From the NCBI RefSeq assembly GCF_033153115.1, contig NW_026889783.1, positions 3,658,001 through 3,722,000 on the forward strand: a stretch of DNA of 64,000 nt, in the 5' to 3' direction. The notes under the pieces were generated by a model that saw nothing but the letters and a program-made list of their open reading frames with translations, did not search any database and was not told where the DNA came from. The stretch is from Saccostrea echinata (taxonomy: Eukaryota). Position numbers and translations under genes: made by a program. Positions 2,384-63,222 of the stretch are shown here, piece by piece. How positions within the stretch are numbered: the first letter of the stretch is position 1; every line of letters starts with the position of its first letter.

Positions 2384-2414
<31 letters not shown>

Positions 2415-2474
2415 AAAAATGTGAAAAGTTTACAGACGGACGGACAGACAAACGGACGGACGACGGACAAAATG

Positions 2475-2517
<43 letters not shown>

Positions 2518-5500
2518 TAAGATGTGAATTTAATTTTTGAAAATTCATGAGGTACTTTTAACTATAATGCTTCATGTATATTTATCACTCATCAAGAAAA
2601 TGCCAGCATTTAGTGTCATAATTATGTCCTCAAGAATTTTCAAAAATTAAATTCACTTCTTAAGTGAATTACCAGGAATAGGAAGTAAATAGTTGACAGG
2701 AAGTTTAAAAGAAACATGAAATACTGTGTAAAGGACTGTGCTAACCTGACTTTGAGGTCCACCATAATGTTCTGGAAGACTTTCCCCTTGAGGACATGAG
2801 CACCTGTTGTGATGGCATTACAAATCCACTTTATGCTTATCTCCTCAAACAACATCAGAAACTGGTCTACGGCTTCCTCCCCAATCAGGGAGACTAACTT
2901 CTCTTTTGGCAATGAAATCTCCACTTCAACATCCATCATATCTCTCTGAAAAAGTCATCTATCATTTAGATCATGAACTAAAAACGGTTTTTGAACTTTT
3001 TAAAAAAGTGTTAGAATGACAAATTCAAAGTTACGATTTACACAAAATCTGCTATAACATAATGTACCAAATTTGCTGCAGAGATGGAAAAGGTTTTAAC
3101 TAAAGGGCACCTAGAGAACACATTCAACTTATTTCTCTACCAAACTTAGTGATGCAAGTACATGTACACAAACTCGAATTACTTCTCTTTCTATGTCAAA
3201 GTGTGGCCTATCTGGATGCAAAATTCACAGAATTCAGAAAAAATCCTGTACTTATATCTGCCAGTGAATGCTTCTGAAATTATCTCTCCTCCTCCTCCAA
3301 CCCCCCCCCCCCCCCATATACTGAGGATTTTTTTTCTTTTCGCGGATAAATTTTTAGCAGTGAGTTGGTGAATTTTTAAAACAGAAAAAAATCAAGAGGC
3401 CCATGGGTGACAATAGTCACCTTAGTGACTGTGGCCCTGCTGCTGTCCATCTGACATCAGATTTAAAAAAAAAAAATTCATAAAAATGTTGACTCCATTT
3501 TCTGGACCAAAGCCTAGTCCTTAGGGGGCTATGATTTATGATTTATTCAAAGTTGAATCCACACAATTTTGGGATGCATCAATGAAATGTGAAGATAACC
3601 AACAATGATCATGCTCAAAATTCATTTAAAGAATACAAAGTGTGTGCAAAGCCAACAAGAACCTCTGAAAACAGACGTGGGATCAGGTGCCATGGACGAG
3701 TAAGCATCCCCAGTTGACTGGTCACACCTGCTATGTGCTACTTATCATGATTGGGTAAACAGAGAAATCCGAAGACATCTGAGGGTGAAAATAATGACGT
3801 AACAATTGGTATGAAAAATGCCAGCCACCAAATGACTTAATGACAGGTTGTATCTTCAAACAAGGTCATTTTACTGACATAGAATTTGCAAAATGTTGAC
3901 TTTAAATGAGATTTTTGATATTCTTTCATCATCAACTTATTTGTCAATAGCTTATCTCTACTGTTTTTCCATAGGAATTATGAAGAATCAGGATCACTGA
4001 TTTTAGCCCAACTCTTACCCCACAGTTCGTAATAACTGAAACCACACAACTTTGGAATGTTTTGCTTATTAATACGATCTAAGGTGGTCTTGCCACTCTT
4101 GAAAAGATTTCTTCCTACATACTTCCTTTTAAAACTTTGATCCCCTACTGTAGCATAAACTTATTCCCGGGGGCCCTGATCTGAACAATCTTGAACCATC
4201 TGAGGATGCCTGCACATAAATATGAGTAATAATTGCTTTTTTATTTATTAAAGGAAGACTTTTCCTATTCTCTTGTAAAATCATGGCCCCATCCTTCTAG
4301 AATCTATGTACATTCATACTGATATACATACAACGTACACTGGACAAAGGTTTACTTGAGTCTCTAGTTCAGGTGAGCTCACAATACATACTGTAGCCTC
4401 TAGTTCAGGTGAGCTAATAATACTTACTGTAGCCTCTAGTTCAAGGTGAGCTAATAATACTTACTGTAGCCTCTAGGTCAGGTAAGCTGATAATGTACTT
4501 ACTGTAGCCTATAGCTTAGCTAAGCTAATAATACTTTATACTGTGGTCTCTAGCTCAGGTATGCTAATAATACTTACTGTAGGGGAATTCCTGGCAAAAG
4601 AAATAAGGGCTTTCTTGCAGTGGCATTTTGTCACAGTTTCATCAATTTTTCCATCTGAAAAATTCATATCACCATGTGCTAGGCATTTAGATGAATAAAA
4701 ACATGCAATATACACTACCAATGTAAAAGGTATGTCAAGAATTCATTCAATGCAGAACATGTCTAAATTTATACTAAGTACATTTATCTGAAGAACTATA
4801 GGTTGACATCATAGAAATCAATGTTACAATTTTGAAAGATATAATTGAAAATTGCTACCAGAATTTTATTGAAGTTCAGAAATCATGAAAGCATAATGTA
4901 TTGTAGTTGAATTTTTCAATCATGTACATTGTATATCACAATCAAATCCGATCTAGAAAATTCAAAAAAAAAAAAAAAAAAAAAATGTGAAAATTGAAAC
5001 AATATGTAAATTTTAACCTTATCTTTCAAAATTGTGAAAATTTAATAATTTCTAATTTTACATTTTTTACAATTTCTTTAGACAATTTTTTTTCTTTTTT
5101 TAAAATTTTGAAACAAATGTTAAGTCAGTCGTGATATATCATACACATGATAATATATTTGAACTACATTATGCTTTTGTGATTTCTGAACTTTAATAAC
5201 ATTCTGATTTTCAATAAAATAAGCAAAGTTTGTTATTCCCCTCAATATATCAAGGTCAGAAGTAAAAAGCTGTTTTCTAAATATAGCAACTTTTTGATAG
5301 GCACACTTTTTTCCTTATAGGTCAGGTGTACATGTACAGTACTACTTAAATACCATTTTAAAACTTTATCTTGAAAAATCTTTTTCCCTTTCACTTTATC
5401 TTAAATTTTTTTTTTCCTTTTACCTTACAACAAAATACATTCTTTTTGTATAACATTTAGAATATCATTATTTTAACTTCCTTAAAAGTGACAAATATAT

Positions 5501-8500
5501 ACCCTGAGATAAGTAAATGACTAGATCAGAAGGCTTCACAAAAGGTAGGATGTCCTTCTTCATATCATTAAATGATATCTGGAAGTGTTTACCCTGAAAA
5601 ATTAAGGAAATATATATAAACCATAGGAGTACAGAAATAAAGAATTAATAATTCATACACTAAAAATACCATTGACATTGATCTTCTAAATGATGTTAGT
5701 TCAAGGTCATTACACATTCTCTACTTTTAAAAGACTTTGTTTCCGATACAAAAGAGCTTTTAATATTAAATTTTTCATTTAAAAGGTATGGCCTGGACAG
5801 GAAGTGGACAGATAAGCATGCTGATAGGTTATCAAAGGACGTGGAAATTTTCCTTTTTAAATTTGTTGTCTTGCATAAGCTGCATTTATGTTGATCTTTT
5901 AATTTTGTTACATTTTTCAGTCTGCCTGATTTCATAAACTGTAAAACACACTCATAGCGAACATCTTATAATCCGATGTGTACAGCAAAGCGATTTTCAT
6001 TTTCTGTGGCTTTAAAATATATTGTGAATTTAACGGATATAACGAATTATGTTTATAATGAAATAAAATCGTCTGTCCTTGGCTTTTTGGTAATATAAGC
6101 TTGTTTTACTTAACATTTTCCAGAACACACCTACACACTGACGTACTCACCAATAAGCTGAGGTCTCCATCATTGTTCCTGAAAGCTTTGTAACCTTGGT
6201 CCAAAAATCCTCTCACATCAGAAAGAGCTAAAATAGTTCAAATTATCTCATAAAATTCTATCATCCACAAAAAAATTTCTTATTAAGAAAATTTACGGTC
6301 AGAAAACTGATGGGCTTTAAGTAAGAGAAGAGAAACTAACAAGATCCATAAGTTGGAGGACATTCAGAGGCGTCTATCATTCCCATGATGCCTAGTGTGT
6401 CCTCACCAACGTAGTATATGCTGCCATTAGACCTCAAACTGGAGAAAAATAAAAATTATTAGTTTTAGGGGATCATTTATTGACATACTGATAATTTAAT
6501 TCCAATACTGCCTACATACCTATTTCCTGCCAGTTCTACTATCTGAGCAATATTCCTTATGTTTTCTTTTGTATAAATATGATCACATACAGCTTGATAG
6601 CACCGAAGGAAAGGTTCTGTCTGCCTACAATATAGAACTATTCTTATAATATGAGCATACATGTATATTAACTAAAAACTATTGTTAGCAGTTCAGAACT
6701 GACAAAATAAATATACTAGGACCAGATACAATTCACATTCAGTAATGGATTTCTCTATTTATAAATCTATTAACATTCATGAAGTATAGATGAACATACA
6801 TGTACCTACCAAGGCCTTTCCACAGGCAGAACAGATAAAGTAGCACCTGCAAAAATTGTCTCCAGAAGGATTTTAGTCGCTGACCCACTTTTCATTCGAC
6901 TAGATCCAGCGATTGGCTCTGGCTGAAATGAAAAAAAAAAGTGCAAAAAACATTTATACTATATTTCGTTGTTTCTCTTAACTTGCAATACATTATTTGT
7001 GAGAAACAGTTTTGTTAAAACTTATACCCCAACAACGGGATTCAGAATAAACACTTTAGAGGAGGCCTTCATTTCTTCCATTTTGTTCACCACTGCAAGA
7101 AAAAAATTAAATTTTGTAACCATGCAGCTTATACCTTATCATTCTTATTCTCCATTCTAAATTCCTTCTATCACAGATTTGGGAGATGTTTCTGTTGATC
7201 AATTTACAACAGATAACAGTAGATTGTTAGACACATACATGTACATTTCTTTTATAACTTGCCTTGTAAAAAAGTGGAATTCCATTTTTCTATTGGATTA
7301 TTTCTGAAAGAAAAGAAAAATAATGATCATACTACACCAGTTTTGTTTTCATTTGCAGTCCATTACAATGGTGCCACTTAAACAACTGAGAAAAAGAAAG
7401 GAGCTGTAAAAATCCCAAAAACTACAGGTGTGAACACATCTAGTTTATCCAGATGACCAGATAGCATCTGACCTTACCTTGCTAGATGAGTGGGATTGAA
7501 TCCTAGAACTGCAGGTGTGAACACATCTAGGTTATCTTAGTAGAACCTGACCTTACCTTGCTAGATGAGTGGGATTGAACCCTAAAACTACAGGTGTGAA
7601 CACATCTAGGTTATCTAGGTAGAACCTGACCTTACCTTGCTAGATGAGTGGGATTGAACCCTAAAACTACAGGTGTGAACACATCTAGGTTATCTAGGCA
7701 GTACTGAACTTGACCTTACCTTGCTAGATGAGTGGGATTGAACCCTAAAACTACAGGTGTGAACACATCTAGGTTATCTAGGCAGTACTGAAGCTGACCT
7801 CCCACAAAAGGGGCAGACAACCCACATGTTATTCCAATAAAGAGCACCTGCTTCTTCCCAGCTGTTGCCTGACAATAATCAAGAGTTTATATTGGATTAC
7901 AAAGAACTGTCCTTATATTTTATGCTAAGCATGTAGTACGCTCAATACAGACCTCCTTCAGCATTTCCACTCCACATTGTGGATCATCTTCGGGTGCCTC
8001 TTGGGAGGTAAACAGGGCTCTAAATCCAATATAGAAACAAAAAATAATTACAATCATCTAAATGAAGGGAATCTAAATCTAGAAATAAGTGTCTTTATTA
8101 TGAAACATAAATAGAATTGCTAGGGCTGTCATAAAAACAGTGAACTAATGATAATAGCCTCCTTGATTAGTTGCAAGTGGTGCAGGCACTTACTTATCCC
8201 TCCCTGCTATAAGATATTTGAAACATGGCAGCCTGGACAATTCAGACAGCTTTGCATTGAAAGTTCTCTGTAACAAAGAGAGACAGCTATCATTACCTTT
8301 AAATAGTCATCATTTACCATTCCCACAATAATGAAACAAGTTAAACTTACTGTCGTAATAAAACCAATCCTGCCAGAGGTTCCACAGCCACTAAGTACTA
8401 CAGCACCTGTTGCGGGATTCTAAAATAAAATTCAGTGATGTTATGCATTATAGCTTTTGTAACAGATCCTACCTCTACCCATTCTGGATAAAAACAACTA

Positions 8501-9444
8501 TATCATATAGAGAGGGGTGTGAAAAATTGTACTTCACTGACACAGGATCTATGTAATAAACAAACCTTGATAACAGAGGCTGCAACGGTGATTAATTTGT
8601 CTAAGGTTGCCAACACATCTGCATCAAATAAACTCTGAAAATAAAGGAAAACTTAACATTTATAATATGAAATCCATATTATTTCTTTACTCTAGAAGTC
8701 TTCTAAACTTTTAGGCATACTTCTATATTCACTATACATGCAATTAATTACTTTATACTTACTTTATACTCATTCCAACCTTCGAATATTTCTTGATCAC
8801 ATTTATGAAGCAAAGAAACTATATCTACAAGAGAGAAAAAAAATGTACTCAAAATCAGTTTCAGGTAATGATTATGCACAATAAATTGATAATTAGATTT
8901 TATAGAACAATTGTCTTTACACCTACCTAAAGGGCTGGCAACATCAATATTCTTTGTGATGGGGTTGGCAGCCTCTGTTACTGGAGTAGGCATTTCTTCA
9001 CCTGCAAGAATGCAAAGGGACTATCAGCCTAACTGAAGTCTTTCAGGAGTTATTCCCCTTGAAACACATTTTTTTGGCCCACATTACTTTGCTTTGCCCT
9101 TTGGAACATTGCAAGGACTTGATTTCATTTTTTTTCTTTGATGCACCAGGTAGAGTGATCGAAACCTTGCATTATAACTCTTCTCAGCTATCATGCATAT
9201 CTATGCCTATAAGACTAACCATGCTAACATGACTATGTCATGATGCCATTTTATACTAGTTGAAACACCCCTCTTAATGAATTTTTTTCCATAAGAAAAT
9301 ATATATACTGCGTAAAAAGGACATTGCAATTTTCTTTCTGTTAAGAAAATAACACCTTTTACTGACAACAAACACTAGAAATAGGGATCGATGTCATATC
9401 CTGTATTAAACAACGTTACCTGCCAGTCCTGCCGTAGACTGCAT
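279..9444 (-). CDS. GCKR: Glucokinase regulatory protein-like / MurQ-derived double-SIS protein (3' end runs into the N gap and beyond the window start)
   Basis: Phase-consistent exons (minus strand): 9420-9444, 8927-9001, 8763-8824, 8566-8634, 8351-8419, 8194-8267, 7953-8019, 7720-7868, 7263-7303 (GC donor), 7028-7092, 6810-6922, 6520-6624, 6341-6438, 6151-6227, 5503-5593, 4578-4654, 2746-2945, 819-858, <279-409. Translation is colinear with vertebrate GKRP: PVTEAANPITKNID, VLSGCGTSGRIG, EAPEDD, IGITCGLSAPFVGGQ, VLGFNP, PEPIAGSSRMKSGSATKILLET, KWICNAITTGAHVLKGKVFQNIMVDLKVSNNKLFHRA. Confidence 0.93.
1232..2517. mobile_element. Helentron/HINE-like non-autonomous element carrying an internal ~167-bp satellite array (Cg170/pearl-like)
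   Basis: Starts ACAAGAGGCCCATGGGCCACAACGCTCACCTGA. About 6 tandem ~167-bp units (CTACACTACC at ~1689, 1856, 2023, 2190), then a GACG/GACA microsatellite (~2433-2468) and terminal GCTCACTTGAGCCTTCGGCTCAGGTGAGCTAA with a subterminal inverted repeat/hairpin. Architecture matches oyster satellite-carrying elements. Confidence 0.8.
3393..4380. mobile_element. Degenerate copy of the same HINE-like element, interrupted by a Penelope-like 3' fragment (~3582-3990)
   Basis: Same 5' motif (CAAGAGGCCCATGGG) and 3' motif (TCAGGTGAGCT) with decayed satellite units. The inserted block matches 38541-38920. Confidence 0.65.
4355..4581. repeat. ~36-bp tandem repeat (~6 copies) joining the HINE 3' end to the GCKR exon-16 splice donor
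   Basis: Unit approximately TACTTACTGTAGCCTCTAGTTCAGGTGAGCTAATAA. Its TACTTACTGT is the reverse complement of ACA|GTAAGTA, the donor at 4578/4577. Confidence 0.85.
7417..7790. repeat. ~80-bp tandem repeat of the GCKR exon-8 3' end plus its splice donor (3 full extra copies plus a partial)
   Basis: CCTTACCTTGCTAGATGAGTGGGATTGAACCCTAAAACTACAGGTGTGAACACATCTAGGTTATCT recurs at ~7472, 7551, 7630 and in the genuine exon end at 7714. Confidence 0.92.
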
Positions 9445-46547: not shown

Positions 46548-49500
46548 TCAACTATTGTCTGTAGATTTTAAACCAATTCCTTCACATTTAATGATAGTAG
46601 AATTCTTTGTCAATTTTTGCACTTCAAATTTTGCCTGTAATAAAAGAAATATATATTTATCATATATTCCCTTGATTTTGTTCCAATGTAAATTAAAAAT
46701 ATATATATTTTTCATTTCTAATAATAGTGTATAAATTTTCAGACTTTTGCACTGTAAGTGCAAATTTTGATTTTCACTGATAAATCATTTAAACATTCCC
46801 CTTCCCCCAAAACCCTACAATATTGCAACAAAATAATAGACTCTTGCCTTTGTCATCAATGACGCCACATGTATGGCGGTTTCAGTGTGCAGGGATAAAG
46901 GGCCACACAGGATTTCTGACTTCCCTTCAGCTACTGCCATCAGGACTATCAGCTAATGTAAAAAAAATCTTAAAATAGATCTCTGCTTAAATTATAATTT
47001 AGGAAATAAAGTTAAATGATTTTAACAAAAGCAAAAATTAGGGATGGCAACAATTAACTGACTAATTAATTGGTAGGAAAGATTGTAATCAGTTACAATA
47101 TTCTCATAACCAGTCAGTTGATATATAGTGCTTGTAGTATACAATTTTTCAAAAATATTTCCATCTTTTTAAATTAAAACTCTTTTGTAGTATGTTTACA
47201 ACTGAAATGCGGCAAATGTTCAAAAATGCTGTCAAAACATGTCCTGGCAATTTCATTTTTGTAACCCTGCATACTAAATCAAAGTTAACGTACCCATACA
47301 AAAAATTCTATCTGCTTTTGTTCCAATTGATGCATTAAATCAACAACTAATTTTCTACTCATCAATGTTTAACTGGGTAATTGTTCTTGTTTATTAAATC
47401 ACTGCAAAACTTTGCTATATTTTCAGTGAAATGTCATCAATATCGACAGATTGGCAATGTTTATAGAGTCTGGGACAGCAGATGGTACAAAAACACACAA
47501 GACCAAGCAATCATAATTCAAAATAAAACAACAATAAAAAACAGAATATGAAGAATTTGTTTCATACAGTACACTAAGTCTAGTTCACTGTGTGTTGTTG
47601 AATAGTAAACTAGTTTATGTCCGTGATCAGGAACCCCCTTTCAGTGGTGACATAATAATAGCGCAAAATTTCCTCTTTTAAAAAAAATTTTATCAGTAAA
47701 GTATCTTTCAATTCTAGGAACATCTATGCCATCACAGTAATTTCTTGAGAATAAGATACGAAGTTGCCAGTTTTTAAAATAAAATTACATTTTTATCTAC
47801 TTGGTTTACTGGTTACTCGGTCTGAAAAATTTACAACCAGTTACAAAAAATCATCCAATTGCCATCCCTAGTAAAAACAAGTTTTTTTTTTCTTATGTTC
47901 AATATTATTTCAGTTTAAATTGCTAAGATGCTAAGGTATTATAAAAATAATATGATTTAAGACAAATATGAATTTCAGTCTGACCTGATCTTGTAGAAAC
48001 TCATCCACACAGCCGCCATTAAACAAGTTGTTAATCAGCATGTCCCCCGCCTCCTGTCCGACCCTCTCAGCAGGCTTACCTATTGAGGATACAAAACACA
48101 GAATCATACACAATTCTTTTTATTCATAAAAAATAATTTGAAATTCATTTAACCTTTTAGTCTTATTTCTACCTTTCTTCCCCAGAGCTGATCCTGCCAG
48201 CAAACAGCCAGTGCTTGTTTCTGCCACAACTCTACAATCGGTCAGTTATGGGTTAGTAATGGGTCAGTAATTACTAAACAGAATTGATATCATACAAAAT
48301 GAAATGTTTTATGAACAAGAGGTTATGGTATTCAAATAAACTTTGTGATGAATGACACTGCCCACTCATTTTTCTACACTTACATAATCCCACACCCGAC
48401 CCCGATTCCCTCAGTTTCTTTATGCACTTCTATCTGGATGGGGACCCCTCGATAGTGTTCTTTGATGACACCTGTAGCACACTCGGCCATAATGTGAGCT
48501 ACCTACAAAAGCACAATAAATATTAAAGATATTGCATCTTAACAAGTGATAAGAGCATATCATGTATGGCAGAAATGAAGGGAGGTAAATCTTCATATAG
48601 AATATTAATATGAACGGGGTAGAGTTGTCTACCAATGCTTGGCTATCTTGAACCTAAGGAGTTTCATGTTATATTTAATAAGAAAACCCAGATCCAATTT
48701 AAAAAACAAAATGTTGTGTACACTGCTGTATAAAAATCAAACACTTGAAAATTCTTACTAAACATTTTACATTTAATATAGTGTATGTTCCTTGGTAACC
48801 TATGGTATTTTAATTTTTTTTTTCTCATGATAAAGTCTTCAATTTTGGCATTATCAGCCAAGAGGAATCAAAAACCTAGACTATAAAAGTCACTAAGTCC
48901 AGATAAAACACACTCCTAAAGGTCCATGTACATGTAATAGTTCTAGAATTTGGATCTGTGAACGAGGAACCTTTTCAGTTCAAAATTTAGACACATTTAT
49001 GTTTTAATGAAATATGCAATTAAAAAGGCAGATTTCTGATGTGAAAACTTAACATGAACAGTGAATGTTGAGGTTTATATTTACTGAATAATTTATTATC
49101 CATACCTTTTTAGGCAGCACCCCTGCCACAAATGATAGGCCAAATATTCTGGTGACCGAGCCCTGTTCTGTCATTGTGATTCCTCGTAGACCAGGACTGG
49201 GGGACACCTTAACATGAACCTCTCCTCCTCCTTTTGGGAAGAAACCCCTACAATTCAAAGAAACATTATCTTTCCTAAAATATCTGTATAAAAGCTTTAA
49301 ATGTTAGAAATGATGGGATATAAATATATGTGTGCCTTTTAATATCATCTCAATTTCATGTGATTTTTAAAGTATAACACATCATTTTGTAGCTGCAGCT
49401 AATCATTTTGATATTTATCAGGTAATTTCTGATAGACAGCTGACGACATGGATGTAAACCTAATTTTATGTTTCTTAGATTTATTTTGAGAAAAACTAAT

Positions 49501-52500
49501 GTCCAGCATTAAAAAATTGACCTACAAATTTTGAAGAAAGATTTGTAGCTCTAGTGATACCAAAAGTTAAAAAAAATTGTGCAACTTTATTATTTTGACT
49601 AACCTTCTCTTAATTTCACCTTCAAAATGGAGTCCAAAACGTGCAGCAATAGGACGAAATACCTGCAATACAAGCAGAATAAAATGCAGCAAATAAACAG
49701 AGTGGTTGTTTCATCTAGGTTCCCTCTCCTTTTTATTTCCATACCTGTAAATATTGAGCCTTAGGAATCCTGAAATTACAGAATGGTGGACAATGATAAA
49801 AATATATGCTCCCTGAACCCCACCACTACTACATACATATTTGTATTGAAGAAAAAAAATTCTGTTAAGTAGAAGTTTAGCTTGTTCAAACCAAGGTCCC
49901 ACACTTAAAGGGATAAAGGCATTTATCAGGTCCACAAAGTTTAAAGTTACAACCAAGGTTAATGTTTTTGTGACAGACAGACAGCTAGAAGATGAATGCG
50001 ATTTAATGTTCCCTGGCTTTTTTGAAAGCAGGGGACAAAAAGCCACCTTAACATGCAATTAATGCCTTATGGTGTAAAATACATGGTTACATAAACAATT
50101 TACTCAGTGTAGGATGTTTACCATTAGAATATAGTCAATTTGTGGAGCCATTTCAGCATTGGTTCCACCAATCAAGGACATATGTACTTCTCCATCACTG
50201 AAGAAACAGCAGGGCACAGCTGCCTGCATCAATAAACATATACTCCTACAAACAGAAAAATATTTCACTTCATTCATAATACGCTGAATTCTTAAATAAA
50301 AACATCATCATGTAAAAAATATATTTATCTAACTTATATTTAATCATTATAAATAATGATATGCTTCCATTACCCAGTGAATCAATGTAAATTTACATAC
50401 ACTTATAAATTGTTTTCTCTTTGTTAAGAACTACGCATGCTAACTCTCGATTCCTTCTTACATTTTACACCCATTTAATTCAATACTAATGGCAATTTGT
50501 CCATAAAATCTTTATTGAATGCAAAGAAGAGTTCAATGGTAATTGATTATTAATTTTAGTACCAGTGTTAAATAGTTAATTACTCTTAATTCCAGCTCTT
50601 TTTATAAGGGGGGTAGACGATTTTTCCCATTGAAATCAGGCTTGAAAGATCAGCATATTTTAAAATATTCTTGGATATGGATAAATGTTCTTCGAATCTT
50701 TCCCTATGTTTCACGCATATAAAATTAAACATATGTAATTAATAAAATACAACGTTTAAGTTGTAAACCCCTTCGAAATTGGTGAAAAAATGAGCATTTT
50801 TATCGTTTTTTGACTGTAAACATATGTCCCCCCCACCCCCCACCCAGCCCCACCCCGTGAAACACAAAAAGCTTTGGTATAAATTTGTGAAATAACAATC
50901 CATATTACCTGTAAAAATGAATTTTTGTTCTACTGGGGGGAAAGACGTTTTAAAAATATTTTCCGGTTTCCATTGATTTCTATAGTGAAAAACACCAAAA
51001 TTATAGAGTTATCTTTCATTGTTTTCCCAAATAAGTAATGTTTTATAAAAATTCATATAAATATCTATAAAGATAAGAAAAATTATTCAAATATGTTAAC
51101 TTTTGAAAATTGACTTGGAGGTAGGCGGGAGAGCAATACTATTATTCACAGTTCTTTAGTATTTGCTTGCTTATTTTCATTGAAAGTTCAAAAATGTATC
51201 ATACATAGAATATGAGATTAAAACTTTTGGGTTATCTAGTGTTTGTTTGCCCACTTCCAACTGGGTTGGTAGGTAGGTAGGTAAATTTTTTTCATAAATT
51301 TTTAACATCAATGCTGAAGTTTCAAAATTCATTGAAATTGAAGGTATTAATAAAATTGAAATAGTTAATGGGATGAGAAAATTCCAGAATAAAAAAAATT
51401 GTTTCCTCAAGGTTTAAAAAAGTTTTGAGTTGAGCCATTTATTGTCAGTTGGACAGTAAAGTGCGAATAGACAATTTTTTAAAGATGGCCATGCCTACCC
51501 AGCAGTTTTGGTGTCAGCTTTATATGCCCCAGCCTTGACCTTCCCAGGTATAAAGGTCACTTCTGTTGACCCCACAGCACCATTTTCCAGCTTTCCTCCA
51601 CATATTTCTGAGACTAGTTGTAGTCCAGTGAGGTGTTGAGCTCTAGAAAAATAAAATCTTTCTCTTTATTGTCATCAATATTATATAACGGTACATGCAT
51701 GTCGTACATGGAAGTTTTTGAAAATTATATATTACTGTCAAATATACATGTACACGTCTTGTCATAAAACATATCCAATCTTAACTGTAACTATCAATCA
51801 ACATTTCTAAGACATTGTACATAGATGACACTCTTCATTTAAGACATCATCACATAATTTATTTTGTTTTCCAAGAGCCAAGAAACCCAGAAAATAATTT
51901 CTTCTGAAATCTTAAAATCTTGCAAAATTCACACAAAATCTTCCTGGCTCACTGTCACATGGGGGCCAGATGCACTGGGTCCCTGCTGATTGACAGTAAT
52001 GCAGAAAGGGGGATATGTAAGATGCACACAATGAAAATGCAGTGCCAATTGAGACATGAAATATTAGCTACAAATGGCTGGATCTAGAGTGACTTTATAG
52101 GGCAATGGATGTGACTGAAATGATACAATAATAATAGCGAGCGCAGCTTGTCACTGCAAGCTCTTAAAGCAATGCCTGGGCGAAGAGAAAATTAGGACTG
52201 TGCACATTGATCAAAATGAATTTCTTTCCACAGTAACCTGTGGTCCTATAATGCTTTGCGAATTGCATTTCGCCGCAAACAACGTTCTTGCGGTAACAAG
52301 AGGTTCCAAGAAAAAATTTACTCAACTTGATTTGATGGATATATAGCAGATAAATAGTAGATTAAACTTTCTTTATTAAAATTAGCACTGTTCAAACTTT
52401 GTTTTGGTAATGCAACTTACAAGCGACGTCATGTGACGTCAGAGTCTAGACGTACTAAATGTCATGTGCGGTTTGAAGAGCCCGATCTAAATAAAACTGA

Positions 52501-53213
52501 ATATAGGTATCTGCGCTTGCCCTAACGGTCGCACTGTCAACATATTACAGACAAATTCCAGACATTTAGTAGAAATTTGTAGACAAGAGGGTAAAGTAGT
52601 ATCTACATTTAAACATGGACCTCACATAAAATAAACTAAAGCAGTCTGCTAAGCAGGTGCTCTGTCAATGTATCTCCCAAAATTCCTTTAGTACCTGAGT
52701 CCAGGTTTATCTCTTCCTGCCCTTATTTTCTGAACACGAATGGGCTGATTGAGTAAACAGCTCAATGTTGCAGCATTCCTTAAAATTTGTCCACCCTAAA
52801 AAAAATTGAGTGTCATTTGTGAATTCTTAAATGTAATAGCTACACACATAAATGCATTTATAATGATTCGTTAATATAAAAAAAAAATCATTCCATTTTA
52901 CATAAAATGTTAATTTTTTGCTATTGTAGTACCAGGAATATTGAACAGTTTTATTAGCAATTATAATTAGTTTTTCTCGTAGTTTTATTAGCATAATTAG
53001 GTATATTTTACCGGAAGCTTACCAATTTCAATGTTTATTTTAATACATATACTCATTGCTAGACCTAACAAACAAATAAGATTTTCTACATGTTGGACAA
53101 TGCCACTACGATAAGAAATCAGTTCTCAATGTATTAAAATGGAGCGCGACTCTTACCCCCTCTAGTACACTGCCATCAATATCTAAAAATTCATGCCGAA
53201 CACTCGATGCCAT
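46548..53213 (-). CDS. RTCA: RNA 3'-terminal phosphate cyclase, ~363 aa
   Basis: 11 exons: 53157-53213, 52695-52795, 51499-51642, 50122-50245, 49604-49662, 49106-49247, 48384-48502, 48173-48231, 47985-48079, 46848-46952 (GC donor), 46548-46634. Motifs [80 protein letters not shown] and the catalytic His in SLHTETAI, which separates RTCA from RCL1. Confidence 0.97.
47039..47870. mobile_element. hAT-like MITE in an RTCA intron
   Basis: TIRs TAGGGATGGCAA / TTGCCATCCCTA with an imperfect 8-bp TSD GCAAAAAT / GTAAAAAC. Confidence 0.75.
50560..51157. repeat. Inverted copy of the 34646-35250 repeat
   Basis: Ends ...GACTTGGAGGTAGGCGGGAGAGCAATACTATTATTCACAGTTCTTT. Confidence 0.8.
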
Positions 53214-53450
53214 CCTGGGGAATTGTGATTTACATGTGTATGTATATTGCACAACACTGACAAATCGAAAGTGAAAATAACGCATCAGGTCCCATTGCAA
53301 ATCGTCGGGATCGAGATACACGATTCTATTTTCGTTTTCATTATTTACACAACTTTGCTGCGTTTGCAACATCAAATCATATTGATATTCCAATGAAAAA
53401 AGCAATATTGCAGTCTTAGTTTATTTAGATGTCAAGGAAACGAAAGGAAT
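53214..53450. promoter_or_regulatory. Compact bidirectional promoter and 5' UTRs shared by RTCA and the RlaP-like gene
   Basis: Only 237 bp separate the divergent ATGs (53213-, 53451+). The interval is CpG-containing and repeat-free relative to the introns. Confidence 0.7.
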
Positions 53451-56400
53451 ATGGAAAATGATGAACCTGTGTGTCTGGCAACTGATGTTCTTCAAGCACA
53501 TGAGAGGTTACATCTGAATCTGAAACGGAGTCACAGACACACAGATGGTGGGTTTACTTTCTTTCTTTTTCTTCTTCTTTTTTTGTATCTCACTGGATCA
53601 AAGATTTGATCAAAATTTGTTCATTGTCGGTCTGCATGTCGCCTGTCTTCTAACTTTTTAACGTGAACATGTGAACCAATTTTAACCAAGCTACAAGAGG
53701 ATTCAAGTTTGTCCAAAAGATGACCGTTCCTTTCATACAGTCATAGTCTATAAATGAGGAAGTTTTTAAAAATCTTCTCAGATAATGTATGTGCATAAAA
53801 GTTAGGCCCTATATATTTACACTTGCTGTATTTTTCTAATAAGCCAACTGTAAACAGGGATGGGGTAATCGTAATCGAGTAATCATAATCGATTGTAATG
53901 ATTACTTTTTTTCAAGTAAGCGACAGTAATCTGTAATTGAAGAGATTTTCCATTACTTGTAATCGTAATTTAATCGATTACAGTTAAAATTTTCAATGTA
54001 ATTATAACTTTTTCGATTACTTTCGATTATTTTATACATAAATTGATGTTATTTTGGGGAATTATTTCCAGTCAGTCACACATAGATATCAATATAATTT
54101 GGTAAATAAACTGCATTGTACTCGAAAAAAAAAGAAGATGGAAATACTTATTCATATCTGAAAATGTTTAAACTTCAAACTTGTGTTTTAGTAACTTTAA
54201 AATTTGCAAAATCATTCTCATGTTTTCATTGAAAATTGTAAGGTTTGCTTTTATATTAGTGAGAGGTTATAAGTGTTTGTAAGAGAGGGAGTGTATCACT
54301 GTGTATGCTTATCTTAATTGGCTAATTAATTGACTGAGACATCCTTGATTTGCAGATAATGAGGTATAAACCGTGAACTACCTAGTGTTTAACTTTTATT
54401 CCAATGAAGACAAACAATATTATTAAAACAATTAATAGCTCTCAAAACACTTATTTCAATACAGAATGAAATTATGCTATTTGTTTCATTACTTAAAGAC
54501 ACATTTAATTTACATGTTTATTACTAAGAGTTCTAATTTACTTTTTTTTTTTGAAAAAGACACACACAGGAATGTTTAATGTGTACTGTCAACATACGGG
54601 CAGCCCAAATACTCCTAATGAAGTTATTCACAATAAATTATTAAATAATTTTTGCAACAAATCAATAAATATGGAGGTTCAGATCCAAGGTTGAAAGGAA
54701 TAATTAATTCGTAGGCATATTTTATTGTAGGAATCATGTCTCCACTTTTCATGGTAGAGAATCCCTTATCTGGGCATTTAGTGAGAATGTTAGCCTGCCC
54801 AGAATAAAACCTAAAAAGGAGCACATTCAAACTTCAGTGAATAACATAAAATTTACCATTTAAATATTGCTTTGATATTTGAAGGGATAAAAACTTGGAA
54901 GTAATCGATTAATAATCGATTACATCTTCCAAAGTAATCAATTACAATCGATTACAGGTTAAAAATGAGTGTAATCGATTAATAATCGATTACACAAAAT
55001 TCCTCTAAGTAATCAATTATTAATCAATTACATTTTAATTTCAGTAATCGTGCCCATCCCTGACTGTGAAATTGATTTGAATACCATTTTCGTGTATACT
55101 CACGCATAGAAATATGCAAGGAGAAACTTGTGCTAAAGTGACGTCACAATGAGCTACAGAGATGTTAATAAAAATGTAACAATGTAGGGGATAATTCAAA
55201 CATTGAGTATATTTGTGGTGCTTTTGAACATGTAAAATGTAAATATGCCTACGTGACAAGTCTGTGTGATTTACGGTACACACCAATAACTCACACAAAA
55301 CTTAAAAACATTCCTTAAATGAAAGTGTTCTTTTATATTGTGTGCATAAAGTGTAGATTACATTTTGTTTATATCACAGCCCCCAGGGTTAGAATAGGGC
55401 TACAACAGGGGTTCAAGGTTTTACAGATACAAGAATATTAAGGGATCAATCTTTTAAAGTCTTCTTCTCAAGAACAGCAGTGCTACAGTTGTCAAATTAA
55501 TATGTCAATATTTCAATATCACTAGAATATCAATCTGATATGGTAGTATATTTAATATCCTGTCAGTAAATTTTTTGAAAACATGTGATCATGAGTTAAG
55601 TATCTTTCAGATGCTCATTTGTCAAAATGGGAAATCGGATTCAAGAGAACTTAGTAAGTTATGTTTTATCTGTTATAAAGATATGGGTATACACACTTGG
55701 CAAAAGGCCCATATGATACAATTATCACAATTGATGATACAATTATTGCTCCTTTCCTCTCCTTCTTGCAGTGTTAAATGTTTCTGTGTTAGTTTTCAAC
55801 AGTCTCCTGAGCAGTAGCTTTTATTTTATATGATTATTTGTAATCTGACTGAAAATTTAAAAAATTCAAGTGAAAAATTAGCACTGTTAAATCGATTTCA
55901 TAATGAAATTGAAAGTGGAGTACAGTATTTTTTTTTATTGTAGATAATCTTTCATGGCAATTCAGTAGGCTTCATGCTCATGTAATGTAATTCATGCTCA
56001 TGTAATGATGTATTGCCAAAATAATTGTGTTGGATTAGTTTTGGAAACAGACTTTTACAACTTGCATTGTAGGATAAATATCTTATTTTAAAAGTAGCAA
56101 CTCCGTAGTTTTGTGAAGTACATGTAGTTATATTATCTCATACATTGTAACTCGATCTGTTAAGAAAGATAGACAGGTACACAGAAAGATAAAAACAGTC
56201 CACATCTGTTCTGGTTCACCTGGATCTCAATGGTAAATTTTTTTGTACAGTACTATATTCAGCTAAGTTTATCATAATTATGTAAATTCATATGTTTTCA
56301 GTGTTCCAGAAGTCAGTAGACACCCTGGATAATCTGCGGGACATTAAAGGTGTCTTGGATGGATCAGCTAGGAATTTTGACTGCCCTGGTGTCTGTGAGG

Positions 56401-59400
56401 ACCATCTCCTGGAACTCAGACAGCAGGTGCTGATGCATGTCCCCTCCTCTGTCTCCCCAGAGAACAGACAAAAATTCCAAGACCTCATTGGCAAAACATT
56501 TCAAGGTGAGAAATCATGCATTTAGTTTAACGATGGGAAATGACAAGACATATTTATCAGCAAAACTTCATAATCTTGTGTTAATATCAAAACATTTGGA
56601 TGAATTGCATTGTAACACTTAAGTTGCTACCTGATAAAGTTTGAATAAAACCAGAGAAAAATTAGGCTGAACATTATTGTTAAGTAAAAAAGTTTCATTG
56701 TAGTGTACATCCTACCAAGATGTGACTTTGATCAATAACTCTCCATAAAGCTTAGAATATACATTTTGTTATATGTGGTAACAATGGAAGGGCTATTAAA
56801 ATACTCTGTTTAACATACTTGTTAAATATTCCATATACAGGATTAGAGGTTTTATCGGCAGTCCTTGTGACGTGTCCCTGGTACCAAGCAAGCCAGGACG
56901 AGCGAGGGGAGCAGGCACGCCATAATGTCCTCTTCATAGTTTACCTGTCACTTGACCACCAATTCCTAGCTCCAGTTAATCAGCATGTTTTAAATGAAAA
57001 ATTTGTCCTAGATAAGGTACAAAAGTCTTATAAATTTGATATATTTTTATACATTTACCCTCATCGTCAGTGGGCAAAATCAAAATGGGGCAAATTCAAC
57101 AGTGTGATAGGATGATATTAACATGGAATGAAAATAACCTTAAGGAACACTGTTAAACATTAAAATTGGAAATTTAACAAGCCTTAGATCCCAAGGAATG
57201 TGGTATTTCAGGGCTGGCTGTATGCTATAGAGCTGTACCACTTTGTGTACGCCATTGTGAAAGGTAGAACCAGATGTGTGGAGGTCCTGTATTGTCCAGA
57301 CTCTGCCCAGTTAATACAAAAGGACCAATGGAAACAACTGAGAGATCAGCTGAATTTTTCCCAAGTTACAAGTAATGCAAATATTACACTAAATTATTTG
57401 TAAATGTGTGTTTTATACATTTAGAAAACAAAAATATGATTTTTTTAGATTTACATAGGACAGGTGACCGCTGGATAAAGGTAACCGCTATGAGAAGTTT
57501 GACTGTATATTATTTGTAACATCTGCAGTGATCGATTTAGGTTTTTGGCAAAAATTCTTTTTTTAGAACTCCAGGGGTTAAACGGAAGATTGTATTTATA
57601 GAACTCCAGGGGTTATAAGGAAGATTCTATTTTTAGAACTCAGGGGTTATGTGGAAGCCTGTAAAGGTCAATCAGTCAGTGGTATTGGAAAGAAAGGAAA
57701 AGATGGCAAGTTCCGTCTAGTAGAGTCTACCACATTTCACCAGTTCTGCAACAGCTTTAGGTAATGACAAATCACTCTAATTGTTGAAATGATTGATATA
57801 TTTAGCAATACATTTAGTCAGTAGTCAGAGTTGTCTCAATTTTTATCATCTGAAATTTCGCACTTAAGAGCTTGTCATGCATGTTAGTTAAATCACTGCT
57901 TTTGTGACTTACCTACCTTTTTCAGATTGATGAATCACTTGTACAACATCTCTGCTGATTTACCACCCTGTACAGATCCTTCCCAGCTGCTGAGTCTACC
58001 AGACATAGCTGTGAGAGGGAAGAAACTGCTGTACAGCCTTTATAAAGTATGGATGAATACTGGGAATATCAATCTATTGGATACTTTCTAACACTTTCAT
58101 AATATTTAAACTTCTAATATCTTTCCAGGTAATATTTTCTGGATCATAAAACACTAAATTAAATTTATTGTAGGATCCAGATGTGTCAAAGAGAGATGTA
58201 TTTGACCTACTTGTCCAATGGCGTGACTCAGTAATCTCAGGTCTCAAAAACCTCCAATACACCAATCAACAAGAAATGGAGGAAATCATAGGAAAATGGC
58301 AAATAGAAACTAGACTGAAAGGGAGGAAGATCTCTGTCCCTAAAGGTAAGCTGTAGAGCATGGCCATAGATCTGTGGGGAAGGGAGATATTAAAGAGCAT
58401 GCAAAAGAGTTCAGTTATGTATGACTAGATGTGCCAGAGTTGCTGAGATTTTTTTTTACTGTATTAAGTTATTTTCATGATATGTTTTATGTAATTCATG
58501 ATACGTTTTATGTAATTCATGATACGTTTTATGTAATTTATGAAGTGTTGCCAGATGAACATTCTTCATTGACAACACAGATGCAAGAAATTGGTGGACA
58601 GGTTGCTAAGTTACAACCAGAGCAAATTATTCTGATTGCTCAGGCAGGCAGTCACATGTACGGCTTAGCCACGCCCACTAGTGATGTGGATTTCCTGGTA
58701 ATCTATTCAGAACCATGTGAGGTAAAGTTTAGATTTATTATTTGTTAACATCATGTACCTTTTTTCATGTAATGAACATATTTTTAAAATGCATAATAAT
58801 TGAAACATCACTAAATTGCACAATGACTAGGCCATCTTTAAAAAAAATTGTTATGTTAATTTGCCCTCTCCCGACCAACTGACTAAAAATAGCCCGACAA
58901 TCTCAAAACTTTTTAAACCTCCAGGAAATGATTATTTTTTAAAATTCATTTTGGAATTTTTTCATTTATTCAACTACATGTACTATTTTAATTCTATCAA
59001 TACTTTTAATTTCAATAGATTTAGAAAATGCAGCACTGATGTTAAAAATTTCTTGGGAAAAAAAATTTTGCTGCCTACTTACCAATCTTTTTTTTTTCAT
59101 CTGAAGTCAGAAGAGGGCAAACAAACATTTTTTAAAGATGGCCCTATGACCAGTGATTTAATTGTAGATTTCACATTACTGAAATTTTGGATTTCACAAT
59201 ACTGATTTTTTTTACTGTATAAAGTAATTTACATGATACTTTGCGCATGTACATTAATTTATGTAGTTATAAAATATTGCCAGATAAACATTCTTCATTG
59301 AATGAATTGAATTATTCATTTCTTACTTTTTTTAGTTATGTGTGATAAAATCAAAATGTCTTGAATATTAAATATATAGAATAAACAGTGTAATCTCTCC

Positions 59401-62400
59401 CAATTGGAATTAATCTACTTTTGTTAATGTCCAGAATGTGTTAGGAAGGTGTAAAGAAATCAAGGATAATTTTGAAAGCAGAGGTCCGTCCAAACTTCTG
59501 GAGTATGGTGCTTATGAAGCTCGCCTTTTTTGTGAGATGTTGCTAAAAGGAAGTGTTGTTATTCTGGAAGTAAGTTTTAGAATGCTACTTCTAAGTTGAA
59601 GTCTGTCAACATGTTATTAGGTAAAGTGTGAAGTTTGATAAACTTTTCTCATAAAATGAGAAACTTCATGTGACAAAGATATTTCAAATTTCAAATACGA
59701 AGTTTTGCTTTTTCTATGAATTGCTTGTACATTGCTCTCTAAACAAAAAGATAAAATATTATGTCAATCAAGATGAGACATTTTTTTTTAAATTAAAAGA
59801 GGATAATCTGATACATATATTTTGATTTTACTTTACAGCTGGTATTTGGAGAAAATCACAATTACATGAGCTCATTATGGAAGGTATCAATGTACAACTT
59901 GTACATGTATATGATAAAATTCCCTTAAATACAGAGTATTGATAATTACAAAGATGTACTTTAATAAATTAAGTAGTACATGAATATGATTATTCTCTTT
60001 CAGGAATTAGTCAATAAGAGAAAGAGCTTTTTGTCAGAAAAAGGAATTCAGCAATATTTAGGACTGATACAGAACAACTTAAAAATGTTAGAGAGGGACA
60101 AAAATGGAGGGGCTTCCAAGGACAGGAAACTTTTGTATCAGGTGTGTGGACTAGATAAAATTAGGTCTTTGGAGAAAAATTAACTTGTCCATTCAGTCAT
60201 TTTAGTTGCTTTCATCCAGCTACAAAATATTCTCTTTCTTTAGTAAAATGTTAATGCTTATTGAAACAATATTTGTAAATATGGTATTTATGAAAATATT
60301 TCATAGTTGAAAAACAAGAATGATTCAATATTAATTAAGGAATAAATGTTTTGTTTTTGGTGTTTATGGAGTTACAAGTTGATTGGATCATGTGATAATT
60401 TATATGAATGTTGAACTGTACAAGAATTACCACTCTATTCAACATCCCCATACCCCCCCCCCCCCCCCCCCCCATTTGGACAGTTTCCTATATATGATAT
60501 GTTATTTGAATAATTGAAATACAATTGAACTTCGATATCTCAAACACTGATATCTGGAATACCATGGATATGTCAAAGTTGAAAGTCCCAACCACTTATT
60601 CTTGAAGTATTTTACTCCTGATATCTTGAATCCTTGGATATCTCGAAGTTTTTTCTTGGTCCCTCGAGTTTGAGATAACGAGGTTTACCGTGTAATATTT
60701 AATCGATACTGGTGTGTTTCTTATAGTTATATATTTTCAGTACCAGACCGCCCTACTTCATAACATAGTAAAACAAGCAAAAGATTTTGCAACGACTCTC
60801 CTTTCTGAAAAAATGTGACTGACTTAGGAAATGCCAAATAAGTCACATGTCTTGAAGTTGGTACAACACATAACTGACTAGGAAATGCTTTTGGAATCAG
60901 TTGCTTTCCTTGCTGTCAGTACTTATGACTGATTTAGGAAATGCCCCATGAGTCATATACTTTGTAGTTGATTCAACAAGTGAATGACTAAGGAAATGAC
61001 ATTTGGAATAAATCACCTACTTGTAGTCAGTATAAGTGACTGACTTGAAAATTCCCATTATGTTACATACATAGTAGTTGTTCTCAATACAGGTGACTAG
61101 CTCAGGAAATGCCCAATAAGTAATATGCTTAGTAGTAGTAGTTTGAACAACAAGTGACTGATTTTGGCCTCCAACCACATTGCTTGTAGTCAGTACAAGT
61201 GACTGACAGGAACTGCCCAATAAGTCACATTCCTAGTAGTCCTACAGCTGACTGACTGGCAACATACGTTTACCTCAGAATCCATCTATCACAAAATTAT
61301 AGCCGTATTGATGATTATGGTTAATTATCAGTAAGAAATTACATTAAATATAAATTATTTGAAATGTTAAGTTTAATTAAGTCCTAATTACCTTACGTTT
61401 TTTTCTGGGTTTACTGGATTTTTAGCTGTATTTCAATTCTAGATATTCCATAAGAGTGATGCTGTAGAGAGAATGATGAATGGTGATGTACCCAAAGTTA
61501 GATGTAGTGGAGAACTCCGGGATTTCATCATGAAAATCAGAACAAAACCACTAGAGGTAAACATAACAACAACTAATGGGATTTCTCAATGGTTTTGTAA
61601 ATCATGTTGAATGCTTTGTACATTTGTAAGTTATGCAATTGGTTTTAATGCATCTTGGAGTATTTTAAAAGATAACCATTTATGTGAGTATTTGGATGAC
61701 AAACTAAAGTTTTAAAGAGAGTTAATTGCAAAAATTGTTTAAAAGTGTGTAAAAATGAATGACAATGAGCAAAATTAAAGCTGTTAACAGTTACATGTAT
61801 AAAATGTTAAGGTCTCTTAGGTTGACATTAGGCAAAAAAAAATTTAATCTTTAGTTTCTCAGGCCAAAAAATTTAATATTTAATGCAGCAGGAAGGTCTC
61901 TTTTTGTTTTATTTGAAGCAGTTGTTATCTCTCTCTCTCTTTTTTTTGTCAATCAACAAGATGATATCATCTGATTCTTACCATTTTAATTCTGATATGT
62001 ACTCAACTTTAGATAATGTTATTTCAGACATTTTTGATAAAAAGTTAATTTATAAAGTACCATACATGTAAATTAATTAAAAAGTTAATTCATAAAGTAC
62101 CATACATATACAGGGGCGTAGCTTCCATTGTGGCAATGAGGCAACTGCCTCACTAGATTTTTAACCACCAACACTCCCTCCCATATATAGTTAATAATAC
62201 ATTGCAGAAAATATCTTGTAAAAATTATAATTTAAGCAATTCTATAATGTACGTTCATACCAACAAGGTTTGGGCTCTACCTCCATTACTGAAAACTCCA
62301 AGTAGGCAATGATTGGAAAAAATTAAAAACTGATAAATGTTTGACAATTATTAGTTTTGACGATATAAAAACAAAATTAAAAAAAAATGTATTCATTTTA

Positions 62401-63222
62401 AAATGTGTTAGTTTTAGAAAACATATTTATTAACTCTTTAACCATCGTCGAAAACCTGTGGTGGTCTAGCTTCTCTTGCTTCGTGGGTTTCTGACGATGC
62501 TCTTTTAGATATTTTAATAATATGTGGTATCATATCCACGCTATGAAACTGGTAAAATTAACTATACTTCTGTGCAGGAGAAGTCTGATAAAACACCCAA
62601 ATCCATATTCTGTCCGGAGGGGTGTGTGGTGCCCCCCTCTACCCCCCACCCCCCACCCACCACCACCATGGCGCTGCCCTGACCTACTTGGGGCCTTAGG
62701 TGGCCCCATACCTCCTGCCGCTATGGTTTTGCCTCACTAGAATTTTAAGCCAAGCTACGCCCCTGATATATATACGTGTAATGTGTAACGAAGAAAAACG
62801 TCTTTGAGCAAATATTAAAAGGGGCATAACTCAAATATTTTTTTTTTCAACTTGGAAAAATAGAAAAATTTATTTCCCTTTTCAATATTTCAATAAAATG
62901 ATCAATGCGGGAGTGTTTTACCTGATGTGGCGGTGCCGAGAAACTATAGATTAATTTTTTTGGCCTTAATTCTTTGTGTGTGTTTTAGGTTTATATTAAA
63001 AATCTACACATCTTAAAGAATTTAAAAATATTTAATTTTGTGAACTCATTTCAGAATGACTTTGACAGGGATGTTCTGCTCACAAAAGCAAAACAGAAAG
63101 TTGATGAACTGTTTACAAGATTGGCAGCAAGGAAAACAAGACTTAAGGAAAATATGGACTTTAATGTAATGACAGACTGGTTATTGAATGTCAGGGGTCT
63201 GAAATGTTTGTCAAATATATAA
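53451..63222 (+). CDS. Tandem RlaP/YcgL-like (PF10127-type) Pol-beta superfamily nucleotidyltransferase, ~606 aa
   Basis: 13 GT-AG exons in continuous frame: 53451-53547, 56302-56505, 56841-57016, 57212-57371, 57637-57760, 57926-58046, 58174-58345, 58555-58721 (alternative acceptor 58546), 59435-59569, 59839-59883, 60004-60141, 61443-61556, 63055-63222. The C-terminal domain has QAGSHMYGLATPTSDVDFLVIY, YEARLFCEMLLKGSVVILELVF, LWKELVNKRKSFLS..QYLG and terminal DWLLNVR, typical of the family. Gene structure confidence is high; family assignment is from motif recall. Confidence 0.85.
53855..55062. mobile_element. hAT-like non-autonomous transposon in intron 1 of the RlaP-like gene
   Basis: TIRs CAGGGATGGG / CCCATCCCTG, subterminal GTAATCGATTA repeats and an 8-bp TSD ACTGTAAA / ACTGTGAA. 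Confidence 0.85.
57561..57657 (+). repeat. ~36-bp triplication of a splice acceptor plus exon start
   Basis: TTTTAG|AACTC(C)AGGGGTTA....GGAAG occurs three times. Only the third copy (acceptor 57636/57637) keeps the reading frame. Confidence 0.9.
58828..59146. mobile_element. MITE (related partial copy at ~51240-51491)
   Basis: TIRs TAGGCCATCTTTAAAAAA / TTTTTTAAAGATGGCCCTA. Confidence 0.7.
60520..60694. mobile_element. Small Tc1/pogo-like MITE
   Basis: TACAATTGAACTTCGATATCTCAAAC ... GTTTGAGATAACGAGGTTTACCGTGTA imperfect inverted termini. Confidence 0.5.
60815..61258. repeat. Degenerate ~50-bp tandem repeat
   Basis: Recurring GTGACTGA..TAGGAAATGCC.AATAAGTCACAT..TTGTAGTCAGTACAA. Confidence 0.65.
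61828..62969. mobile_element. AT-rich MITE with a nested GC-rich MITE (62111-62765)
   Basis: Outer TIRs TTAGGCAAAAAAAAATTTAATCTTTAGTTTCTC / GAGAAACTATAGATTAATTTTTTTGGCCTTAA. Inner TIRs CAGGGGCGTAGCTT / AAGCTACGCCCCTG sit within a TA run. Confidence 0.7.

Follow-up and report, generated by a model that had tools for sequence, protein, structure and literature searches.

Do two adjacent oyster genes, both apparently encoding enzymes of RNA ends, contribute to one repair process? The question is raised by a 64,000-nt stretch of the Saccostrea echinata genome (contig NW_026889783.1, positions 3,658,001 to 3,722,000; hereafter, the window). RTCA, the gene for RNA 3′-terminal phosphate cyclase, lies there on the minus strand, and directly beside it, on the plus strand, begins a gene for a nucleotidyltransferase (NTase) apparently related to bacterial RlaP. 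Our analysis points to a real gene pair and a true RlaP relative, and to a functional coupling that is suggestive and unproven. In the reading that we favor, and on which our confidence is evenly divided, the genes form a divergent pair on one compact bidirectional promoter, and a two-half RlaP-like enzyme plausibly serves a single RNA end-healing process with RTCA. The finding is best seen as an enzyme family already known that takes on a new architecture in animals, and its genomic link to RTCA is suggestive but unproven.

A two-half relative of RlaP

The RlaP-like gene occupies 53346-63222 on the plus strand (coding sequence (CDS) 53451-63222), as delimited by transcript contigs, exon matches to its database protein and tblastn. 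That protein, here called P0077, is the 609-aa "uncharacterized protein LOC133199394 [Saccostrea echinata]", and it served as the spliced product in place of self-joined exons. A sequence-only reading of the window had counted 13 exons in this gene, and 13 coding exons are indeed present, at 53451-53547, 56302-56505, 56841-57016, 57212-57371, 57637-57760, 57926-58046, 58174-58345, 58546-58721, 59435-59569, 59839-59883, 60004-60141, 61443-61556 and 63055-63222. The translation of each one is found, letter for letter, in P0077 (13/13), and the exon lengths sum to 1830 nt. RNA support comes from contigs of four public runs in two studies, which are evidently transcript assemblies because only exons occur in them. 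In these contigs, GT..AG joints link exons 2-8 (56301-56503, 56839-57014, 57210-57371, 57637-57758, 57925-58046, 58174-58342 and 58543-58721). Exon 1 (53346/53350-53546) is joined straight to 56301-56503 in single contigs (X1 record 1 and X4 record 11), and the contigs that join exons 1 and 2 have their 5′ ends at 53346 and 53350. Agreement between contigs and exons is close, with 0-3 mismatches in both studies.

The family of the product was examined with profiles and alignments. For residues 372-503 of P0077, Pfam RlaP (PF10127) gives 43.7 bits, above its cut-off of 23 (E 3.5e-11); NTP_transf_2 comes next (E 8.1e-5), so that the best profile match is RlaP and not another NTase family. RlaP is also ahead in 9/10 homologue matches scanned, of which the eight long ones score 41.7-52.5 bits, above the cut-off, and the two short fragments fall below it. 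The active-type NTase core, GSHMYGLATPTSDVD, is encoded by the exon at 58546-58721 on the plus strand and contains G386, S387, D398 and D400, as located by Pfam and a homologue alignment. With this exon alone as the query against 1.84 billion representatives, full-length proteins of ~610-640 aa were retrieved. When a profile of 37 homologues was compared by hhalign with a Pfam-certified bacterial RlaP (locus L013), the two aligned with 97.4% probability (E 1.2e-11), pairing GSHMYGLATPTSDVD with bacterial GSHLYGLSTPSSDKD, YEARLF with YELKRF, and VVILELVF with PNIIELLF. G386, S387, D398, D400, E433 and E438 are invariant in the 37 homologues and align with the bacterial GS...DxD...YE. Profile, residue and fold data support the assignment of the predicted product as a true RlaP relative, as the sequence-only reading had supposed. 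Scanned in six frames with the PF10127 profile, the genome gave no match because single exons are too short; the P0077 protein query did find the gene.

P0077 has in common with bacterial RlaP (the Pseudomonas fluorescens and Pseudomonas aeruginosa enzymes and T4 NrdC.11) the GSxxYGLxTPxSDxD core, an acidic residue farther downstream that is invariant, the "ILELLF" helix, and an RtcA-type gene neighbor from the Rtc repair set; by its predicted structure, a helical domain may likewise follow the NTase domain. The third carboxylate is Glu in the P0077 family, whereas it is Asp in bacterial RlaP, for which three Asp residues are described (PMC12776372). The architecture also differs. Bacterial RlaP is half as long, whereas P0077 is a tandem of a dead, strongly conserved half and a live half, with the catalytic domain confined to the C-terminal 40%. 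The crystal structure of PfRlaP has an N-terminal NTase domain and a C-terminal helical one, which a terminal helix closes. In the AlphaFold2 model of P0077 (pLDDT 91.9, pTM 0.88), the NTase strands of the live half span residues 379-438 and are followed by helices to residue 600. The N half (1-345) aligns with the C half by hhalign at 86% probability (E 5e-6, 234 columns), with ELYHF...KGRTR..E.L placed against YEARLF...KGSVVILEL in the helix after the core, and with a W..L motif and a C-terminal W...R.GR in common. A language-model look-alike search with residues 1-345 returned RlaP and NTP_transf_2 clusters at a score of 0.92, which lends weak support. The degenerate NTase core of the N half, TCPWY...ARHN in place of GS...DxD, is encoded by the exon at 56841-57016 on the plus strand and was recognized in homologue alignments. 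C112, P113, W114, E121, N129, G223, Q224 and a Lys-rich loop are near-invariant from sponges to oysters. Because the catalytic positions are replaced yet these other residues are so well kept, the N half is best read as a conserved pseudo-enzyme domain without the GS/DxD residues and not as a decaying relic. It probably serves as a built-in partner or RNA-binding module, which would make P0077 a pseudo-dimer with one active site.

Named homologues of P0077 occur in bivalves, gastropods, a chiton, the brachiopod Lingula, the annelid Owenia, the nemertean Lineus, and the sponges Ephydatia and Oopsacas, and every one of them is annotated as uncharacterized. Word-limited searches turned up no homologue in vertebrates, arthropods or nematodes. 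The sequence-only reading had known of no characterized animal RlaP, and our literature searches likewise turned up none; they found only a December 2025 preprint on two Pseudomonas enzymes. That preprint mentions "a small number" of eukaryotic RlaPs, without discussion (PMC12776372).

RTCA, the shared spacer and a second copy

The partner gene, RTCA, has its CDS at 46548-53213 on the minus strand, in ~11 exons with approximate splice boundaries. Exon-containing pieces of its 5′ part lie near 53157-53213, 52691-52795, 51498-51640, 50107-50241, 49570-49650 and 49100-49260, and those of its 3′ part near 48383-48502, 48180-48245, 47990-48095, 46830-46952 and 46548-46640. The start codon, at 53213-53211, opens the protein with MASSVRHEF..., and a stop codon at 46548-46550 ends it. 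All RTCA searches were made with single exons and none with a joined protein. In a profile search of reading frames, Pfam RTC (PF01137) matches several exons. Six exon pieces are collinear over profile positions 11-325/326 of TIGR03399 (NCBIfam, RNA 3′-terminal phosphate cyclase); each of the six scores higher with TIGR03399 than with the RCL1 model TIGR03400. The exon at 46818-46952 (TIGR03399 positions 288-325; Pfam RTC 186-219) contains the stretch LHTETAIH, a His of which we presume, by the RtcA motif, to be the catalytic (adenylylated) residue. Short RTCA exons gave only marginal or irrelevant matches to sequences in the Protein Data Bank (PDB), and the exon with this stretch gave no usable alignment to solved RtcA chains. 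On this evidence, the minus-strand gene is assigned as a canonical animal RTCA, and the earlier description of it as intact is borne out. Like the RtcA/RTCA family (PF01137, TIGR03399), it is collinear over almost the whole profile, including the C-terminal His motif. The enzyme itself looks ordinary; what is unusual is the neighboring gene. A second PF01137 locus of the genome, at C22:15235284-15237516, is probably the RCL1 gene.

The ATG codons of RTCA and the RlaP-like gene are exactly 237 nt apart on opposite strands and diverge from the spacer at 53214-53450, which forms a shared bidirectional promoter region. The RlaP-like mRNA extends at least to 53346, so that no more than 132 nt separate it from the ATG of RTCA, and RTCA exon-1 contigs have their 5′ ends near 53250-53300 by rough arithmetic on binned depths. 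The gap between the two transcripts is therefore ~50-130 nt, with a rough estimate of 50-95 nt from the RTCA exon-1 contig ends. This arrangement is a compact bidirectional promoter, and with so short a distance between transcript ends the two genes are probably co-regulated from the shared spacer. Location of both ATGs, a direct count of the spacer and spliced RNA contigs starting at 53346/53350 agree with the head-to-head spacing of 237 bp in the sequence-only reading. Its wording that the genes are co-transcribed from one promoter is incorrect; they lie on opposite strands and are divergently transcribed.

The spacer contains two motifs resembling an interferon-stimulated response element (ISRE) or the binding site of an interferon regulatory factor (IRF). 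The first, GAAAGTGAAA, is at 53267-53276 on the plus strand; the second, GAAAACGAAA, is at 53330-53339 on the minus strand, ~10 nt before the point where the RlaP-like transcript contigs begin. Sites of this type, GAAANNGAAA, number 15 in the window as compared to 7.3 expected, and from these 15, ~0.06 would be expected per 237 nt, as against the two within the spacer, which were noticed post hoc, after the spacer had been looked at. Oysters possess an IRF-dependent antiviral axis, with a response in ISRE reporter assays (PMC8218723). The two sites hint at a possible immune-inducible control of the pair.

A second, inverted copy of this region is present on the same contig ~3.06 Mb away (C34:6.753-6.823 Mb, 6753001-6823000). 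It is at least 63 kb long and collinear with the window from 13018 to past the window end, at 97-99.6% identity. Both genes are intact in it; the NTase gene differs by 8 substitutions in 1830 coding nt and the 237-nt spacer by 0. No mirrored copy of the first 4 kb of the window was found (1000-4000), and the arithmetic midpoint shows no inverted repeat. A contig-wide fold-back was considered as the origin of the second copy and rejected, given the lack of a palindrome center and the unduplicated first 4 kb, which also indicates that the duplicated block is bounded. A divergence of ~1% is compatible with an uncollapsed haplotype as well as with a recent inverted duplication. The sequence-only reading had noted neither this doubling of the block nor the tandem of dead and live halves in P0077. 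An indel of 655 nt also separates the copies: only the window copy has the sequence at 62111-62765, which falls in the final intron of the RlaP-like gene, contains Pro-rich reading frames and may be a mobile element.

A shared end-healing process or chance neighbors

The case for a common process draws on bacteria, where RlaP biochemistry is known for two Pseudomonas enzymes only, first in 2025. Bacterial RlaP adds 1-2 nucleoside monophosphates to an RNA 3′-OH, with damaged RNA preferred, and aminoacylation of over-trimmed tRNA can be restored by it; in P. fluorescens and P. aeruginosa its gene has rtcB on one side and rtcA on the other (PMC12776372). Because of this gene order, the oyster pairing has an exact bacterial precedent, and, judged by predicted gene identities, the oyster pair repeats the bacterial rlaP-rtcA adjacency. 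The context differs in that the oyster gene is intron-rich and shares a bidirectional promoter with RTCA, whereas bacterial rlaP is in an operon. By homology with bacterial RlaP, P0077 would most likely add one or a few nucleotides to the 3′-OH of damaged RNA such as tRNA, and it may plausibly act with RTCA in the same RNA end-healing process. To the coupling of the two proteins in one pathway we give a chance that is even at best and perhaps a little lower. The term prokaryote-like repair neighborhood, as used in the sequence-only reading, holds insofar as RTCA is the immediate divergent neighbor; it extends to just this pair, with RTCB on another contig of this one genome.

The strongest alternative takes both genes at face value, with a promoter region in common, and sees their pairing as an accident of genome arrangement in the Saccostrea lineage with no common pathway. 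We regard this as a serious possibility, somewhat short of even. Several observations weigh against a shared process, and those that concern linkage speak for such an accident. The linkage is known from one genome, and the second copy is no independent evidence for it because it is ~99% identical and represents either a haplotype or a recent duplication. RTCB, on contig C29, is unlinked to the pair. A distant protist-like homologue has no RTCA beside it, over 4.4 kb on its upstream side and 3 kb on its downstream side. Head-to-head (bidirectional) gene pairs are common in animals, and some striking pairs are expected when many windows are read. The contig depths of the four runs are unfit to rank genes or to gauge whether RTCA and the RlaP-like gene are co-expressed. 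With regard to the enzymes themselves, the Pfam RlaP match spans only profile positions 13-144 of 249, so that P0077 differs from bacterial RlaP in aligning over only the first ~60% of the profile. RTCA acts on a 3′-phosphate, whereas RlaP needs a 3′-OH. The authors of the preprint see the 3′-OH product of RlaP as at odds with the need of RtcB for a 3′-phosphate end, and call the relation of RlaP to Rtc chemistry unresolved (PMC12776372). An accident, however, would have to account for a partner that is the very gene flanking rlaP in Pseudomonas operons, for two enzymes that both act on RNA ends, and for a very short spacer. By our own rough estimate, with ~30,000 genes, the odds of a single RlaP-like gene adjoining RTCA by chance are ~7e-5, with the prior for this exact pair put at ~1e-4; the value rises to ~1e-3 if any gene for RNA end healing is accepted as the partner.

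A second alternative is that the NTase has no part in RNA-end repair and is a signaling or small-molecule nucleotidyltransferase, for instance a producer of oligonucleotide signals like HalB or a modifier of a metabolite like the ANT enzymes, possibly with an immune role. It takes its support from the predicted fold. The closest solved structures to the C half (residues 358-578) are the uncharacterized NTase 3c18 (Z 9.2), Hailong HalB (9dbj, Z 8.7), and kanamycin and spectinomycin NTases (kanamycin nucleotidyltransferase ANT(4′), 1kny, Z 7.5); these Z scores of 7.5-9.2 are middling, and such values are common. P0077 shares with ANT(4′) and HalB a Pol-beta NTase core and a helical bundle. Identity, however, is 11-13% at Z 7.5-8.7, which marks a resemblance of fold only, and their substrates differ: aminoglycosides for ANT(4′) and, for HalB, dATP, which is made into oligo-dA. 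An AlphaFold and fold comparison had been suggested together with the sequence-only reading as a check on RlaP membership. It recovered the two-domain Pol-beta NTase layout, and no RlaP chain turned up among the PDB sequence or fold matches of P0077; the PDB sequence search gave no match at all. Since no RlaP chain was matched, the fold results agree with RlaP without singling it out, and for the same reason the ranking of folds cannot favor RlaP. The two ISRE-like motifs in the promoter and the IRF-based antiviral axis of oysters (PMC8218723) would suit an immune NTase. Against this, RlaP is the best sequence family by a wide margin, and we consider a signaling or small-molecule role quite improbable.

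An error of assembly or annotation as the source of the adjacency or of the gene model can practically be set aside: some misassembly in this contig is possible, since the block recurs there, inverted, over at least 63 kb, but there are no gaps (no N run) between RTCA and the RlaP-like gene, both copies have the same arrangement with an identical spacer, and transcript contigs of two studies match the exons.

The divergent-pair reading, with its plausible RNA end-healing role, can be extended to an ancient animal RNA-repair cassette, in which sponges and spiralians would have RTCA and the RlaP-like gene linked, whereas vertebrates and ecdysozoans would have lost the pair. A pseudo-dimeric RlaP would then restore nucleotides at RNA 3′ ends after ribotoxin, viral nuclease or stress damage, together with RTCA and RTCB, from a promoter switched on by IRF-type immune signaling through the two ISRE-like sites. 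We consider this extension unlikely. The physiological role of RTCA in animals is poorly defined, and an animal RlaP relative on the RTCA promoter is a concrete candidate for a nucleotide-restoring step in metazoan RNA repair. The fused dead and live halves constitute a natural experiment on active-site assembly in the RlaP family. Should the linkage prove to be conserved, animals would offer a rare example of a pairing from a prokaryotic operon that survives as a bidirectional gene pair; should it not, the family is still a widespread, uncharacterized invertebrate enzyme of interest.

Metagenomic relatives and repeats

A first metagenome scan with a broad homologue alignment was blank. A second scan returned one protist-like full-length homologue, intron-bearing fragments of 3′ parts and bacterial RlaPs, none of which is informative on animal synteny. 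The full-length homologue (L001:4233-6733; the same gene in L002-L004) is on GC-rich (59%) eukaryotic contigs that are probably from a protist. It has both domains, dead and live, with short introns, and its protein is close to P0062. Its neighbors are a divergently placed 218-aa open reading frame (ORF) and, downstream on the opposite strand, a long gene. Matches of RTCA exon 2 upstream of this gene by tblastn (E 0.32) were rejected, with no Pfam match and no RtcA motif in any frame.

The fragments L010, L017, L024 and L005 are AT-rich marine metagenome contigs with intron-bearing 3′ parts of RlaP-like genes, 30-54% identical to a sponge member in the best-matching segment. They are probably invertebrate host DNA, and they are silent on gene neighbors because their 5′ ends are missing. 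Among the bacterial loci, L013:9947-12720 (also L012) encodes a 345-aa RlaP directly followed by a CCA-adding enzyme (PolyA_pol head and HD) and a MazG-like gene, and looks like an RNA 3′-end maintenance cluster without RtcA or RtcB.

Within intron 1 of the RlaP-like gene, the segment at 55328-55521 has a summed contig depth of 650 to 9000 in 4/4 RNA-like runs, with many loose ends, and probably represents an expressed repeat, or a piece of a transposon, in high copy number. Near the start of the window, a repeat of ~1.3 kb at 1225-2520 recurs dozens of times across the genome, on many contigs and with 87-97% identity.

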